The notes under the pieces: model-generated
What the model was told of the DNA's origin: nothing
Seen by the model: the letters and a program-made list of their open reading frames with translations, nothing else
The model's database searches: none
Program-made: the position numbers and the translations under genes
From: Podarcis melisellensis
Lineage: Eukaryota
Direction: 5' to 3' (one strand)
Length of the DNA stretch: 64,000 nucleotides
Assembly: GCA_964234715.1 (NCBI GenBank)
Contig: OZ174288.1
Part shown: piece after piece, positions 11,277 through 49,577 of the stretch
How the letters are laid out: each line of letters starts with the position of its first letter
Position numbering within the stretch: the stretch's first letter is position 1

Positions 11277-12468
11277 TCATACGCTCCGCGAGTTATTCAG
11301 CTTAGTCAGCTCACTGGTCTCACCGGGACCTGCTTCTTTGCAGTCGTTTTTCTCAACAGACTTACCAAACCTACGCCCATCCTCTGGCTTCACTGTCTCT
11401 TTTGGGAGATTCTTGAAAGAGGGGAGCCCGCCCTTGAGCTCCAAATTATGGTCCGAGACGTGGGGCGTCTTGTCCAAATTCTGTACAGAAGGCACCAGGT
11501 TGGTGATCTCGTCCGTCGGAGACCGCCCAATGCTGCCATCCACTTGAACACGGATGTCTGGAGATATAGATAACTGGTGGTGGGGGACGATGCCGTTGTC
11601 CATGCACTTGGGGTACAGGAAGGTCTTCATCTGCCCTTTGCCCTTCACGTTCACCGTCCCCCTGTAATCAAAGTCATACCCCATTTTGTTCAGGATGCGG
11701 TAGCTCTCTTCACTCACCTGGATGCGACACTCCACTCCGGTCGTGTCCATCCTGCTGGCGATGTTCACAGTGTCACCCCAAATGTCATACAGGAGCTTGG
11801 TGGTGCCAATGACCCCGGCAGTCAAGGGGCCGTGGTTGAAGCCAATCCGTAGTTTGAAATTGAACCACAGCATGTTGTTGTTAAAGTCATCAACCACTCG
11901 CATCATTTCTTTGGCAAATTCGAAGAGGGTTTGCAAGTGGCCGTGCGGGCTGTTGCTGTCTTGGCACTGGGACGTGTTCAGGCCAGAGGCGGCCATATAC
12001 GTGGCCCCGATGGTCTTGATCTTCTCGATGTTGCTGTAGTCAGGCTTGCTCAGCAGCTCGTCAAAGTCCCCAATCAGTTCGTTCAGGACTCGGTAGCACT
12101 CCTTGCCTCCTTCGTAGTTCTCCTCGTAGAACTCGCTGAAGTTCACGATGCTGGCAAAGATCACGCCACCACTGTCGTGGTTTTTGGAGTAGCTCTGTGA
12201 GACTTTCAGCTGCTCCGCCACGTGGTAGGGAATGATATTCCGCAGCAGCCAGTCCGCCTGGTCCCTCATGCTCTGGATCTTGGTGCGGTGAAGGTCGGCT
12301 TCCACGTCTCCATGGTAATGCAGGCGGTAGCTCACTTCAAACTCACGGTTTAAGAACCAAACCAGGAGGAGGAGGAGGAAGAAGCCCAGAATCACTTCAT
12401 GGCCAATAAGGTCTGCTGGCCGCCTGAAGTCTTCCAAGGTTGATCGGTAGCATGGATTCCTTATGGAA
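11277..12468 (-). CDS. ADCY9: ADCY9 last coding exon (exon 11): end of extracellular loop, TM12, helical domain, C2a catalytic domain and C2b tail
   Basis: Acceptor ccag|TTCCATA; 1192 nt to TGA at 11279-11277; encodes SIRNPC..LIGHEVILGFFLLLLLVWFLNREFEVSYRLHY, KIKTIGATYMAASG, DIWGDTVNIASRM and the AC9-specific ISPDIRVQVDGSIGRSP segment. Confidence 0.98.
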
Positions 12469-13054
12469 CTGGAGTTGATTTTTTAAAGAAAATATAGACA
12501 CACGCACATACACAGAGTAAATGTAAAAAAGAAAAGAAAAAAGCATTTGTATGTTTTCTCTATTCTTATATTCCTATATTCTAATCACAAGCACACAACG
12601 TTACTCTATTTTAAAATGTTATTCTATTTTAAAATATGATTTTCTAGTCCCCCATGGCAACAGAGACAATTATGACAACTTCATATACGCAGGACCAAAC
12701 TAGACATTGTGTCATTCACACAATGGGACTCTCTTTATTTTGGAGTGGGGGGAGTGGAGATTCAGATCAGGACTGCTGTGGTGAGCAAAGATCCAGACCA
12801 CCCACCCACCCACCCTGCCTAGCTTCTTTTTCAAAAATGTTTTATTGTTTTATTCATTTCAATGGGTATATTTCAAGTAAAACATAGTTGAATAAAACCT
12901 AAAACTCTTTTGAAGTTTTATCACTCAGATACAAATCATTTAACTAAATATATGCAAACAAAACACAAAATGAGCAAACCAAATAAAATTCTGTGCTGCC
13001 ATCAAAAGGCAAACAATCGAATCCTTATTCTTCAAATATTTATTTTAGCTGGTA

Positions 13055-13280
13055 CAGTGGTACCTTAGTTTTTGAACGTAATCCATTCTGGAAGCCCGTT
13101 CGAGTTCCGAAACGGAAAACTCAATACAGAAGCCTCAAAATGGAAAACTCAATACAGAAGCCGCGTTTCATGTTTGACTTTCAAGGCGGGTTCAAAAATG
13201 AAGCATTTACTTCCGGGTTTACGGCGTTCGAAAACTGAAACTTTTGTCAACAGAGACGTTCGAAAACTGAGGTACCACTG
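13055..13280. mobile_element. Tigger/pogo-like MITE
   Basis: TIRs CAGTGGTACCT..TTTTGAACGT / ACGTTCGAAAACTGAGGTACCACTG; TA on both flanks. Confidence 0.8.
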
Positions 13281-13754
13281 TATACAGATTTAAGAGGGCC
13301 AATTGGGTCCTGATAGTATATCATGTTTCACAATTTTCTGAACCCTCTAAAAATCCCAAAATTCATTTGCAGGTTCACCACTTAAGTCATGATGTACCAG
13401 TTTTGTTCCAATACAGATTTTCTTCAATTGCTATTTACTTTCCCTCTCCCTACCACCCCCCCCCACTCTCTCTCTCACACACATACATGGATAGTGTCAC
13501 AATTAGTCACTACTTGGGTAAATCACATCATGTCCAGTTTGGTCCTCAGATGTCAAATAAAGTATTCTGTCAGAGACTCATCCCAAGTTTTCATGTGAGA
13601 GTCTGTTTAACCTTCATCTGTCACAGTTATCTGCAGATTAATATGTCTATGACTGACTAATCTAACAGCACCACTCTCTACATTTCAGAAATATGAATGA
13701 TCAAGCAAGCAAAGGAAAAACACAAAAAACTGGGAACTAGGTATCAATTCTTAC

Positions 13755-13796
13755 CTATAGTTCTGTTCTAACTGAAGATGGGAGATTTCTGTGGAG
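13755..13796 (-). CDS. ADCY9: ADCY9 exon 10, copy c (42 nt, phase 2-2)
   Basis: atttcag|CTCCACAGAAATCTCCCATCTTCAGTTAGAACAGAACTATAG|gtaaga; reads (S)STEISHLQLEQNY(S), aligning gap-free to human exon 10 SSVLTSPLDAVQNFS. Confidence 0.85.
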   Translation of the reverse strand, partial: LHRNLPSSVRTEL

Positions 13797-14358
13797 CTGA
13801 AATCCAAATATAGCAAAACATCAACAGAAATGAATAGGAGAGGTAATAATTGCAGGATTTAGTGAGCTTAATCTACATTTAGAATTTCCATTTCTTAGTC
13901 CCAGGGATTCCACTGGAGTTTTACCTATATATAGCTTGGTGGCTTCAGACATTCACCATGAAGTGATGAAAAGAATGAAGTTTGATGTTGATCAAGCCCT
14001 TAAATGGAAAACCATTTGCTTAAGTCTGAAAACAGCTACTTCTGTTCTTGCCATTATTTAGGGTGCAGACACATGGTGAGCGTTTCTTCTCCTCACTTTC
14101 GCTTCTGTGACACCACATATACCAGGCTTCAAAACTAGCACCGATGTAGGCACACACTGCATTTTTCCTTTTTTAAAAATCCAGGCAACTGTTGTATTTC
14201 TCTAGTTTATTTGGTATTTTTTTACAGTCAATTTGGTTGTTCCCGAGCTAAATTCTGAAGCAGGCTGCTGATGTCTAACTCTTTGGACATGGAGTTCAGT
14301 GTACAGTTGACCTTTTTTAGTGTTTCTAATCAATACACAAGCAAGGTTTTATAGCATA

Positions 14359-14814
14359 CAGTGGTACTTTGGTTCTCAAACGCCTTGGTACCTAAATGCC
14401 TTGGTTCTCAAACACTGAAAACCTGGAAGTAAGTGTTCTGGTTTTTGAACATTTTTCAGAAGCCGAACGTCTGATGCGGCTGTCGGCTACTGTTCCCGGG
14501 GCGCCTGCACCAATCAGAAGCTGCGCCTTGGTTTCTGAACATTTTGAAAGTTAAATGGACTTCCAAAATGGATTAAGTTTGGCGCTTTTGTTTTTGCTAT
14601 TTATTTTACATTTTTTGTCTTTGAGGCTTTTTTGGTTAATTTGTTTTTATGACTATATGGAACCCAGTTCAGCTACTGATTGATTGATTGTGTGACTGTG
14701 GAAATGGATAAAAAAAAAAACCCATCCAAGCAATGACTATCATCAGTGCAGGGATGCTTTGGTTTTGGAAAGGACTTCCAGAACGGATTAAGTTTGAGAA
14801 CCAAGGTACCACTG
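14359..14814. mobile_element. Tigger/pogo-like MITE related to 13055-13280
   Basis: TIRs CAGTGGTACTTTGGTTCTCAAAC / GTTTGAGAACCAAGGTACCACTG; TA on both flanks. Confidence 0.8.
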
Positions 14815-14944
14815 TAATAGTTTTAAATAACAGTTCTTTTAAAGCTTTCTTTTTTTAAAAAAAAAAAATTGTTATAGCACTTCATTTAAGCCTTTGAGGA
14901 GAAAGCAGAAAGTGCAAGCAAGACTGCTAGGTGTTAATGATTAC

Positions 14945-14986
14945 CTGATGTTCTGTGTAGAGTTGAAGATTTCCATGGAGCTGAAA
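14945..14986 (-). CDS. ADCY9: ADCY9 exon 10, copy b (42 nt, or 36 nt from the inner AG; phase 2-2)
   Basis: ttgcatttcag|TTTCAGCTCCATGGAAATCTTCAACTCTACACAGAACATCAG|gtaatc; reads (S)FSSMEIFNSTQNI(S); branch-point-like CTGAT upstream; nucleotide similarity to copy c. Confidence 0.75.
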
Positions 14987-16061
14987 CTGAAATGCAAGAA
15001 GCACTGGATCAGCAAGAAAATTCACAGGCCACTATTCCCTCTGCAGCAACAGCTGCTTGACAAAATGTGACTCTGCCCTGATGCATCAGTTATTGCATCA
15101 AGCATTTCTTCAGAAATGGGCAATGAGCCTCATGTATCTCTGCTGTCTCCAAGGTTGACATGTTACAGCTTCTTAGTCCGTGTCGGATAACCAGGTCTAC
15201 AATATGGTCCTTAATGTGTTTAGTTCAATTGACATGAAAAGGCCATTTTAACACCTGCATAGTGCATGTTTTATGAGGATGGAGGTTGTGTAGAACCAAA
15301 CGGGGGAAATGTTCTGGAAGGCCTGTAAACACCACCTTGGTAGCCAAGATAAATTCAGGACGAATTGGCAGTCGCTGCCAGAATCAGCTCACATTATGTT
15401 TATGCTATAGTACCCTAGCTAACAGGACCAGTGGTCAGGGATAATGAGGATTGTAGGCTGGAAAACATTTGGAGGGCCATGTTTGCCTATGCCTGGCATA
15501 AAGGCTCTGCAGGCTGCGATGTAGGCTAGTGCAGTCTAAAAATGCACTGGAATTGGCCCTTCTGGCATTTTTTACATTCTTTTTTGGTATCCCTACATCA
15601 AACCACTCACACAGGCTCTCTTTTGGGCCTGTGGATCAGGACAGTGGTAGGGCAAGCTCAGGCTGGAGGCTCCAAGTGCCCACTGACCTGAAATACAAAC
15701 TGGTCACCTTACAAATGATCTAAGTAAAAACTGGAGATAATTATCCTCCATTTGGCCGTTTCCATTTTCCTTACACCAAACAATAACGGGCAGGGTGCAA
15801 GGAACCTCAAATCCAAGCTCAAACCAAAAAGGAAAAGGCAAAGGGATCCACCTGATGGCTATCATGCAGTAAAGCATGATGACTTCAGATCCAGAGCTCC
15901 AGAGCTTCTCAGAACCATGTGAATATAAGCTGGGGGAGGGGGAGAAGGAGAAAGCAATTGTTCAAGGTCTAAAAATGCTGCTGGTTGATATAAAGACTTA
16001 GGGAAAAGGCTGCCAGGCTCAGTAATAGCCAGAAACGAAAGGAAATCCAATGAATGCTTAC

Positions 16062-16103
16062 CTAAAGTTCTTTACTGATTCAATATATGATTCCTCCACA
16101 GAG
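16062..16103 (-). CDS. ADCY9: ADCY9 exon 10, copy a (42 nt, phase 2-2)
   Basis: gcgtttttttcag|CTCTGTGGAGGAATCATATATTGAATCAGTAAAGAACTTTAG|gtaagc; reads (S)SVEESYIESVKNF(S), gap-free alignment to human exon 10; strong acceptor and donor. Confidence 0.85.
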
Positions 16104-16532
16104 CTGAAAAAAACGCAAGAGACAGACAACAACAAATCAAAAGCATGGAGGAGAAAAAGAACAGCTGCAAAAAACACCCCTCAAAAAGAGAAAAACGAAA
16201 CACCCCTCCTGGCTGCCACTCTCCAAATCTCATTCTGGGCTGCTAGATACCCATTCTGACACGGAGTTATACACCAGCCTCAATCCTCCTTCCCCCCAGG
16301 GGTTAACCACATTACTTCACAAAACGTCAAAGTATACATCTGATGGCTAAAGTGGCAGCACTTCTAATCAACAAAGACACCTGGTGAATCTGCTTCCAGG
16401 TGGATGAGCCATAAGAATACCTATTTCACTCCAGCTTCCTGATGATGGTCTCCAAGACCCTCACTGGGGAAAAGACACTGTCCCAACTCACAGGCAACAG
16501 GCAGGCAGCACCAGTTTTCCTCAAAGGCTCAC

Positions 16533-16681
16533 CTGTCAGGGCACAGAGGCACCCACAGCAAAACTAGCAAGACTCCTCCAACAAGAGTGGCCAGAGATGA
16601 TCTCATCCAGGAGCTGAGCTGGCAGAAGTTACAGTACTGGACAATAGTGATGAGAATTGCAGAACACATAAACATGGTATA
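16533..16681 (-). CDS. ADCY9: ADCY9 exon 9 (149 nt)
   Basis: ttgcag|TATACC...GACAG|gtgagc; YTMFMCSAILITIVQYCNFCQLSSWMRSSLATLVGG..LCPD. Confidence 0.95.
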
Positions 16682-30516: not shown

Positions 30517-32368
30517 CTTTAAGCTGGTCTACAACCACACTCTGACCAACACGCTCAGTCACCTTTCCATCCTCCATTTCATAGCGGTCATCTAAGTATT
30601 TTGCAGTAGCTTCTGAAATATGGACCTTTCCTGCCACGCCCAGTTGCTCCATAAGGTTGGCCAAGTTGACGTCATTGGACCACACATCGAACTTGAACCT
30701 TCTCATCCCCAGGATGCCACACAGGACCGTCCCAGTGTGAACACCAACCCTCATGTTCACCATCTCTTTCTTTTCCTGACAAAACTGCTCAATGGCTTTA
30801 ATCATGCCCAGCCCCATCTCGATGCAGCAATAAGCATGGTCCTCTCGGGGCTCAGGGCACCCTGCCACACAGTAGTAGCAGTCCCCCAAAGTGCTTATCT
30901 TCTCACATTTTGTGTCCTCGCACAGGCGGTCAAAGCGACCAAAGAGATCGTTCAAAAGCCCCACCAGAGCATGCGCAGATTTGTTGGCACTCATTTTTGT
31001 GAAGCCCACAATATCCGCAAACAAAATACTGACTTGTTCTATCTGCTGCATTTTAAAAGGACGGAATATGATGGGGTTTTTCTGTATAGAAGGCTTTTTC
31101 TTTTTGTTTTTGGGGCTGGAGGTGGAGTGGCGCTTCACGGAGTTCTCGCTTTCGTCGTCCCCCTGCTTCATCAGGTCGTCGGCAATAATCCTGGGCATGA
31201 CGGAATGGATCATCCTCTCCTTGAGGGCCTTTTCCACCTCCAGGTCTTTGCCGTGCATGATGGACTGCCCCACTTTCAGGAAGGTGCTTCTGGACCGCAC
31301 TTCGGACATGATGAAGAGGTGGATGCCGGTGGCGTGGATGCACACGTGCAGCAGGGCTTTGCTGAGCAGGTCCCAGGCCAGGAGGCGCTCCCCAAAGGGC
31401 GAGAAGCAGCTCTCCTCGCGGAAGTAGTAACCGAAAGTCTCGAAGAGGACCGAGTAGGAGAGGCCCAGCAAGAAGCTCAGGTAGAGGGGCAGGTGCATGA
31501 CGGTGTAGAGCAGCAGCAGCACCTCGATGCACATGGAGAAGCTGCCCACCTGCGACAGGCAGGGCCCCGACGGAGGACCCCCCCACTCGTCCGGGGGTCC
31601 CAGCGCCTGCAGCTGCGGCGCCAGCGTGATGGCGAAGACGAGCAGCACGAGGGCCAGCGAGGTGCGCGCCGGGTGGCGCCCGTAGGCGCGCGTGAAGGTG
31701 AAGGCGAAGAAGGCGAGGCAGGCGGCCAGGAAGGCCAGCGCGGGCGCCACGAAGGGGGCCTGGTGCCGCCGCCGCCCCCCTCCTCCGCCGGGGGGGCCCA
31801 GCCGCAGCGCGAAGTAGCCGCCCCACAGCAGCCCCGCCGCGCCCAGGTACGAGAGCGCGTAGCGGAAGCGGCGCCGCGTCTGCGGGAAGCAGCGCTCCCG
31901 GCAGGCCTCCTCCAGGTTGCTCGAGTCGAAGGTGGGGTTCCACCACTGCGCCGAGGCGCGCTCGAACAGCTGCGGGAGCCGCGTCGAGCGCCGCCGGGAG
32001 CCCAGGCCCAGCCCCAGGCCCAGGCCCAGCCCGAAGGCGCCGCCGCCGCCGCCCTGGTCTCTCCTCTTCTTGCCCCGGCCGCCTCGCCCGCCGCCCGCCT
32101 GGGTCCTCCTGGCCGCCGCGTCTCCCGAGCTGCTGCCGCTGGAGGAGGAGATGCTGGCCTTGGCCTTGGCCGCCCCCGGGGGGCTCCGGGCGCAGATCCT
32201 CACCGTGACGCTGCCGCCGCCGCCGCCGCCGCCCGAGTCGCAGCTCACCTCGGTGCTCCGCCGGCGCCGCTGGGGCTGAGGAGGCTGAGGCTGAGGCTGC
32301 TGCTGCTGCAGGAGCTGCTGGTGCGCCGAGGAGCCCGAGGGCGGCGGCGACGCCGACGAGGAGGCCAT
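30517..32368 (-). CDS. ADCY9: ADCY9 first coding exon (1852 nt): N-terminus, TM1-6, C1a catalytic domain
   Basis: ATG in gccATGG context; HQQLL..STEVSCDS, LPQLFERAS, SILFADIVGFTKMS, KISTLGDCYYCVAG, MRVGVHTG, FDVWSNDV; donor AAAG|gtatat. The spliced CDS with one exon-10 copy is 4203 nt (1400 aa) with all phases consistent. Confidence 0.98.
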
Positions 32369-32970
32369 GGCCCTCCGAGCGCGCCCTTCTCCCTAGGCAG
32401 CGGCTCTCAGCGCCGGCCGCCCGCGCCGCCTCCGCCGCCCGCGCCGCCTCCGCTGCCGGGGTTCTGGGTGCCGCCGAAGACCGCGCTGCTGGGGCTCCCG
32501 CCAGGCCGCTCCGGACCCCGCCGCATGGCGCTGCGCCAGGGCCGCGCCTCCCTCACGGCGGGCCGCTCGGCCGCATCGCCCGCCTCCCTGCAAGCGCCTC
32601 ACAGGCCGCGGCGCCGGCTCGGCCGCCCTCGGGGGAAGAAGAAGAAGCAGCAGCAGCAGCGGGGCGAGGGCGGAGGCGGCTGTCACTGAGGCGCGCGGCG
32701 CAGGCGCGCTCGGGAGGGAGGGAGGGAGGGAGGCGGGGACTCGCGGGCGCGCGCACAGGAGAGACCCCGGCGGGGCGCGCGCGGCGGCGGCGGCCGCGGC
32801 GAAGAATCCGTGACCAGAAGCCGCGCTGCCCACTGCGCAAGCGCCCGCGAGATGGCGCGCAGGCGCACGCTTGTCTTGCGCGGCCAAGTTTCCCGCCTTT
32901 GGTCTCCTCCCTCGCCTCAGCGCCCCTCCCCCCCGCGGCTTCTCGTGAGGAAAAATTAGATGGCGGGAGC
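31540..32970. promoter_or_regulatory. CpG island and ADCY9 promoter
   Basis: Extremely GC- and CpG-rich; three NRF1-type GCGCnnGCGC motifs (32698, 32835, 32857), E2F-type TTTCCCGC (32889), GC boxes; no obvious TATA box. Confidence 0.85.
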
Positions 32971-41521: not shown

Positions 41522-41839
<318 letters not shown>

Positions 41840-49394: not shown

Positions 49395-49577
49395 NNNNNN
49401 NNNNNNNNNNNNNNNNNNNNNNNNNNNNNNNNNNNNNNNNNNNNNNNNNNNNNNNNNNNNNNNNNNNNNNNNNNNNNNNNNNNNNNNNNNNNNNNNNNNN
49501 NNNNNNNNNNNNNNNNNNNNNNNNNNNNNNNNNNNNNNNNNNNNNNNNNNNNNNNNNNNNNNNNNNNNNNNNNNNNN
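49395..49577. other. Assembly gap (183 N)
   Basis: Run of n, preceded by a purine-rich, probably LINE-derived tract (about 48400-49394). Confidence 1.

Follow-up and report, generated by a model that had tools for sequence, protein, structure and literature searches.

Tandem copies of a sequon-bearing micro-exon in the adenylyl cyclase 9 gene of the lizard Podarcis melisellensis

In tandem exon duplications of animal genes, homologous exons that share a phase and were duplicated locally lie next to each other (Ivanov and Pervouchine 2022, PMC9013439); such cases were surveyed by Letunic 2002, as cited in PMC9013439. Here we describe such an arrangement in a stretch of 64,000 nucleotides from Podarcis melisellensis (assembly GCA_964234715.1, contig OZ174288.1), referred to below as the window, which carries the gene for adenylyl cyclase 9 (AC9), ADCY9, on its minus strand. 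In this gene exon 10, a micro-exon of about 42 nt, is present in three copies, and each copy ends in an N-glycosylation sequon (N-X-S/T) that is completed across the splice junction. Like other tandem exon duplications, the ADCY9 copies are neighbouring homologous exons of equal phase and local origin that can enlarge the isoform repertoire. In textbook cases, however, the duplicates are swapped in a mutually exclusive manner within one structural element, whereas the ADCY9 copies appear to be added serially, lengthening a loop.

N-glycosylation of adenylyl cyclases on extracellular loop 5 or 6 is established, and in AC6 it has been shown to affect function (review PMC11021717). In AC6, Asn805 and Asn890 are glycosylated, and their removal lowers activity and alters regulation (Wu et al. 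2001, as reviewed in PMC11021717). The sequons of the ADCY9 copies, too, lie outside the cell in a membrane adenylyl cyclase, within the loops of its second membrane bundle. In human AC9, Asn955 and Asn964 are reportedly glycosylation sites, a finding said to come from Cumbay and Watts in 2004. The known AC6 and AC9 sites are fixed in constitutive exons, unlike those in the duplicated micro-exons described here, and to our knowledge neither splicing nor copy number is known to control them. As the best explanation of the locus we favour, with moderate confidence and from sequence comparison, a squamate-wide tandem duplication of an ancestral sequon-bearing ADCY9 micro-exon, of which three intact copies are present in this lizard and are most likely spliced serially.

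Three exon-10 copies between exons 9 and 11

Similarity searches were run exon by exon, and junction codons and residue distances were derived by counting. The last exon (from 12468 down to a stop codon near 11280) matches residues 959-1353 of the AC9 chains in PDB with an E value of 4e-236, compared with 9e-76 for AC8; for the large first coding exon, which runs from 32368 to about 30518, the match is to residues 67-570 of bovine AC9 with an E value of 7e-284, compared with 1e-79 for AC8. Both exons thus score far better against AC9 than against AC8, as expected of an ADCY9 orthologue, and the AC9 proteins of relatives carry PF00211. The exon labels 9, 10 and 11 are taken over from a preliminary description of the window, made from its letters; when the Pogona protein is mapped by tblastn, eight coding exons fall upstream of the copies.

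All exons discussed below lie on the minus strand; intron letters are given in lower case and a slash marks the splice site. Exon 9 (16533..16681) encodes the second-to-last membrane helix and matches residues 892-943 of bovine AC9 (E value 1e-17). Its 3′ end reads CTG TGC CCT GAC AG/gtgagc, that is LCPD followed by AG, with 16533 as its last base and the donor gt at 16532-16531. Exon 11 begins at 12468 with T TCC ATA AGG AAT CCA TGC TAC CGA TCA (S-I-R-N-P-C-Y-R-S), in which the initial T completes the junction Ser; its start (12440..12468) aligns with ERNPCNSS at residues 959-966 of mammalian AC9.

Between these two exons the three copies were read directly. Copy a (16062..16103, 42 nt) reads tttttcag/C TCT GTG ... 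AAG AAC TTT AG/gtaagc, encodes SVEESYIESVKNF and forms N-F-S across the junction. Copy b (14945..14980, 36 nt) reads tttcag/C TCC ATG GAA ATC TTC AAC TCT ACA CAG AAC ATC AG/gtaatc and encodes SMEIFNSTQNI, with an internal N-S-T in addition to the junction N-I-S. It is preceded by tandem acceptors, tttcag/tttcag, 6 nt apart (14981-14992); use of the upstream one (14986) would give a 42-nt copy b that starts with T, keeps the junction Ser, gains Phe-Ser and equals the other copies in length. Copy c (13755..13796, 42 nt) reads atttcag/C TCC ACA ... CAG AAC TAT AG/gtaaga, encodes STEISHLQLEQNY and forms N-Y-S across the junction. The introns between the copies are 1.1-1.3 kb long.

Each copy has a pyrimidine-rich tract, a cag/C acceptor and an AAC-NNN-AG end followed by gtaag or gtaat. 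The copy lengths are divisible by three and the phase is identical, so that all combinations are in frame. Because the copies start with C and exon 11 with T, while the upstream exons end in AG, every junction codon is AGC or AGT, both encoding Ser, and at most four sequons can be formed (N-F-S, N-S-T, N-I-S and N-Y-S). The direct minus-strand reading therefore bears out what the preliminary description had said of the copies, namely that each ends in AAC-NNN-AG and is followed by C or T whichever exon comes next, that the junction residue is always Ser, and that copy b contains an internal N-S-T (AAC TCT ACA). It had also placed the loop between the Cys of LCPD in exon 9 and that of NPC in exon 11, and both cysteines are conserved.

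The copies resemble one another, with 25-27 identities in 42-43 aligned exon positions and a likeness that reaches into the flanks. They are thus adjacent, similar, of the same phase and of near-equal length, and each has its own splice sites, as is characteristic of a tandem exon duplication. Both strands of the whole 64-kb window were also scanned for the architecture of an AG acceptor, an open frame ending in N-x plus 2 nt, and a GT donor. Seven matches were found, four of which come from the three copies (copy b twice, once per acceptor); the other three lie outside the copies and all have poor splice sites. Three mutually similar matches on the correct strand within one 4-kb intron are far beyond chance.

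The ancestral single exon and its squamate copies

The mammalian comparison was made with PDB chain alignments and one bat protein. In mammalian AC9 residue 942 is the last of the LCPD motif, and residue 959 aligns with codon two of exon 11, leaving space for exactly one 42-nt exon, which has its N-X-S at 955-957. The bat protein likewise has a single unit, LCRD-S-SIVISHLSAVQNF-S-SERNPCNSS. Among the matches listed, about 100 full-length proteins of turtles, birds, crocodilians and tuatara have one 13-residue unit each, which ends in N-[FVILA] and is followed by S and then by ..PCN-S/I-S/T. At the protein level the exon is thus single-copy in turtles, birds, crocodilians and tuatara. Since the single exon ends alike in these groups and in the bat, the Ser made by splicing is old. 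On these comparisons the junction-built sequon is ancestral and not a lizard novelty; the squamate novelty is its multiplication through exon duplication.

In all amniotes examined, exon 10 ends in AAY-NNN-AG at the donor, and the first base of the next exon completes Ser. The donor consensus favours AG as the final two exon bases, and acceptors usually prefer G as the first exon base. That the first base of the next exon is held as C or T, not G, suggests selection for Ser over Arg. The single amniote exon 10 is like the copies of this lizard in its position between LCPD and NPC, its 42-nt length, its phase and its ending in N-X plus AG. It differs in being present once and followed by PCN-S-S, whereas this lizard has three copies, an extra sequon in copy b and no PCN-S-S.

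Genomic loci were compared from four squamates. Phrynocephalus has copies a (42 nt), b (36 nt) and c (42 nt), Lerista and Hemicordylus have a and c, and Sceloporus has a and b. Copy a thus has orthologues in all four. The core of copy b is identical to that of the Sceloporus copy b at 27 of 27 nt, and the Sceloporus peptide, SMEIFNSTPNF, is near-identical; among the taxa compared, copy b was found only in iguanians and this lizard. Copy c has orthologues in Lerista (87.5% identity over 64 nt) and Hemicordylus (86%), with the surrounding intron unalignable. When the interval of about 4 kb was compared by BLAST with the intervals of the relatives, nothing aligned beyond the copies themselves and flanks of no more than about 160 nt. 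The copies have therefore been conserved while the introns decayed beyond recognition, which indicates purifying selection on each copy. Since tuatara has a single copy, the first duplication followed the split from tuatara.

Public squamate ADCY9 models (Pogona vitticeps XP_020667597.1, Sceloporus undulatus XP_042293267.1/68.1 and Phrynocephalus forsythii KAJ7306064.1) hold orthologous copies in series; unlike this lizard, they keep PCN-R/K-S. No lacertid AC9 was present among the matches listed in a search with a profile of turtle and squamate sequences; turtles and birds took up most of that list, and besides tuatara it included Pogona and Sceloporus as its squamates.

Outside amniotes, an ADCY9-like gene of the frog Ascaphus truei contains exon 10 twice, as identical 36-nt copies (SSLIPESDTNY) that are separated by 4751 nt and have partly identical flanks. 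They lie at 11300-11335 and 16051-16086 of the fetched locus and are both joined in the NCBI model. This pair either stems from a separate, recent duplication or is an artefact of the assembly.

Sequons of the last extracellular loop

Exon 11 opens with a membrane helix that is followed without a break by the helical domain and by C2, a catalytic domain in the cytosol. Since this last helix leads into cytosolic C2, the loop that precedes it faces outward. Topology had been named beforehand as a check on the glycosylation idea, and the loop is extracellular by this argument. In the order 9-a-b-c-11, each sequon Asn is at least about 16 residues from either helix by counting, a distance compatible with glycosylation by oligosaccharyltransferase. 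At the sequence level, all the sequons are thus of the form N-X-S/T with X other than Pro, in an outward segment distant from the membrane.

The ancestral amniote AC9 has three outward sequons: N-[HR]-T in extracellular loop 2 (ECL2) of the first bundle, the junction N-F-S, and PCN-S-S. In this lizard the first-bundle site reads QALGPPDEWGGPPSGPC and contains no sequon, where bovine AC9 has N-H-T, and the PCN-S-S sequon after the second Cys has been lost, the sequence there being PCYRS. Some of the old sites are kept in other squamates, as N-G-T and PCNRS in Pogona and as NAT/NGT and PCNRT in Lerista. The preliminary description had named both differences from the human protein. The alignment with mammalian AC9 agrees with its replacement of PCNSS by PCYRS; its statement that the first-bundle sequon, given there as NLT for the human protein, has no counterpart here also stands by comparison with the bovine N-H-T.

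In the exon matches and the tblastn map of the gene, no N-X-S/T was found in any other outward-facing loop of this AC9. All potential N-glycosylation of the enzyme therefore rests on the exon-10 copies, and to this extent, at the level of sequence, the dependence that had been proposed holds. The predicted sequons may be occupied, and loop length or glycan number may be relevant to the folding, export or surface stability of AC9.

Joining of the copies

Copies a, b and c are joined serially in Pogona (XP_020667597.1 and a UniRef entry) and in Phrynocephalus, and the Sceloporus isoforms X1 and X2 both join a and b. A contig from an RNA run (Logan contig SRR12656982_12512, 2778 nt) has a continuous frame of 676 codons with three 42-nt units between LCPD and NPC. 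The copies are thus used serially in relatives and not by mutually exclusive choice. With introns of 1.1-1.3 kb and every combination in frame, nothing enforces mutual exclusion.

Serial splicing of a tandemly duplicated exon would also be readily tolerated. The 42-nt exon encodes the central part of the last extracellular loop, which connects membrane helices 11 and 12. Since it is phase-symmetric and nothing but a loop relies on it, a tandem duplicate can be spliced in after the original without harm. Because the sequon overlaps the donor site, each duplicate brings its own sequon. Squamates duplicated exon 10 twice, and this lizard has retained three intact copies. Here, too, all three copies are probably used, and the most likely product, 9-a-b-c-11, would have a loop about 26 residues longer than the ancestral one, with four sequons. 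Skipping of any copy would stay in frame, so that minor isoforms may occur.

Several observations weigh against regular inclusion of every copy with its sequon. The Lerista edwardsae copy c is intact (16256-16297 of the fetched locus; STELPHLGLEQNY, with tttcag/...AG/gtaaga), and the deposited Lerista model omits it and reads FTSSFTEDPC instead, which could reflect an oversight in annotation or genuine skipping. Several of the models of relatives are automatic predictions. The donor of copy b is weaker (gtaatc) and the pyrimidine tract of exon 11 is poor, so inclusion could be partial. Nor is the junction Ser always retained: the Sceloporus undulatus models are without copy c and have Arg after copy b (N-F-R), and in agamids the junction after copy c is Gly (N-Y-G), which makes no sequon. 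Given these lineage-specific losses, neither the copy number nor each junction Ser can be strictly required, and the arrangement of one sequon per copy appears favoured but not obligatory.

A stronger role for splicing had been proposed in the preliminary description, in which the cassettes supply 0 to 4 sites and splicing could tune glycan load, trafficking or extracellular recognition. Spelled out, a, b and c would be independently regulated cassettes whose tissue- or state-specific inclusion gives isoforms with 0-4 glycans and different loop lengths, and so tunes the trafficking, stability or outside recognition of AC9. We consider this unlikely, though several features of the locus speak for it. 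Every combination is in frame with Ser rebuilt at each junction, copy b has a choice of two acceptors and a weaker donor, and the Lerista model lacks its intact copy c. Beside copies b and c, 30-160 nt of intron have been kept in squamate families that are about 170-200 million years apart, and such conservation of flanks is typical of regulated alternative exons. In addition, two related elements resembling miniature inverted-repeat transposable elements (MITEs) flank copy c: the intron that leads from copy c to exon 11 holds one at 13053..13282, whose terminal inverted repeats measure 27 nt, and the intron separating copies b and c holds the other at 14357..14816, whose terminal inverted repeats measure 25 nt. 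Their terminal inverted repeats begin TACAGTGGTACC, and the two are mutually 70-75% complementary over 68-80 nt; if they paired in the pre-mRNA, copy c could be looped out. A squamate-wide form of the proposal, in which conserved intron flanks and perhaps the inverted repeats determine, by tissue or state, how many glycans (0-4) and how many loop residues (about 23-63) AC9 has, seems to us similarly doubtful.

A further observation in favour of such regulation is a pair of Gnomon isoforms of Hemicordylus capensis, X1 (a and c) and X2 (a), which differ by exactly copy c and are the only isoform pair found to differ by one copy. However, they come from an ADCY9-like locus (CM050090.1) that comprises only copy a, copy c, the last exon and a new first exon (MGTAGLCA), is without exons 1-9 within 8 kb, and adjoins an unrelated MOSC-domain gene. 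The locus is a duplicated 3′ end of ADCY9, a truncated form of the gene, and as such weak evidence for cassette splicing, whereas the copies are included serially in all other full models and in the one RNA contig.

It is less probable still that only copy a, the nearest to exon 9, is used, and that b and c are leftover duplicated pseudo-exons that look intact by chance or through recent origin. Models with a single copy do exist (Hemicordylus X2 and Lerista), and very small exons are often skipped unless aided by enhancers. Against this, b and c retain an open frame with acceptor and donor in squamate families that are far apart, amid unalignable introns, and they are found in the proteins of Pogona, Phrynocephalus and Sceloporus (c being absent in Sceloporus) and in the RNA contig. 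A mutually exclusive cluster, with exactly one of a, b and c per mRNA, is the classic association of tandem exon duplicates (PMC9013439) and would suit copies of the same phase and similar length, but it is very improbable here, as the Pogona, Phrynocephalus and Sceloporus proteins and the RNA contig hold two or three copies in series, introns of more than 1 kb between the copies impose no steric block, joint inclusion keeps the frame and so offers no filter by nonsense-mediated decay, and no docking/selector complementarity was found except for the transposon-like repeats.

Elsewhere in the window, the N-terminal cytosolic tail of this AC9 (about 31950-32370, minus strand) contains low-complexity runs (poly-Gln/Pro, Gly7 and GLGLGLGLGLG) that bovine AC9 does not have. 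An open frame at 41522-41839 on the minus strand has a dynamin-type GTP-binding motif and looks like an exon of sarcalumenin (SRL), the neighbour of ADCY9 in mammals. ADCY9 is followed downstream by a globin gene in Phrynocephalus and Lerista. Positions 49395-49577 of the window are a run of 183 N, an assembly gap or a masked stretch.

Under the serial duplication that we favour, each added copy means one more sequon and 12-14 more loop residues, and tandem exon duplicates need not turn mutually exclusive. A phase-symmetric micro-exon with a sequon lying over its donor would be a clean natural example of multiplication by tandem duplication, and forms with one, two and three copies can be compared within one protein family. 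For annotation the locus carries a warning, as exons of 36-42 nt are easily overlooked, for example the conserved intact copy left out of the Lerista model. If independent regulation of the copies were true after all, the number of glycans on a signalling enzyme would be controlled by splicing. In this lizard, where the copies are the sole potential glycosylation sites of AC9, the gene would offer a simple system for the role of glycans on the last loop.

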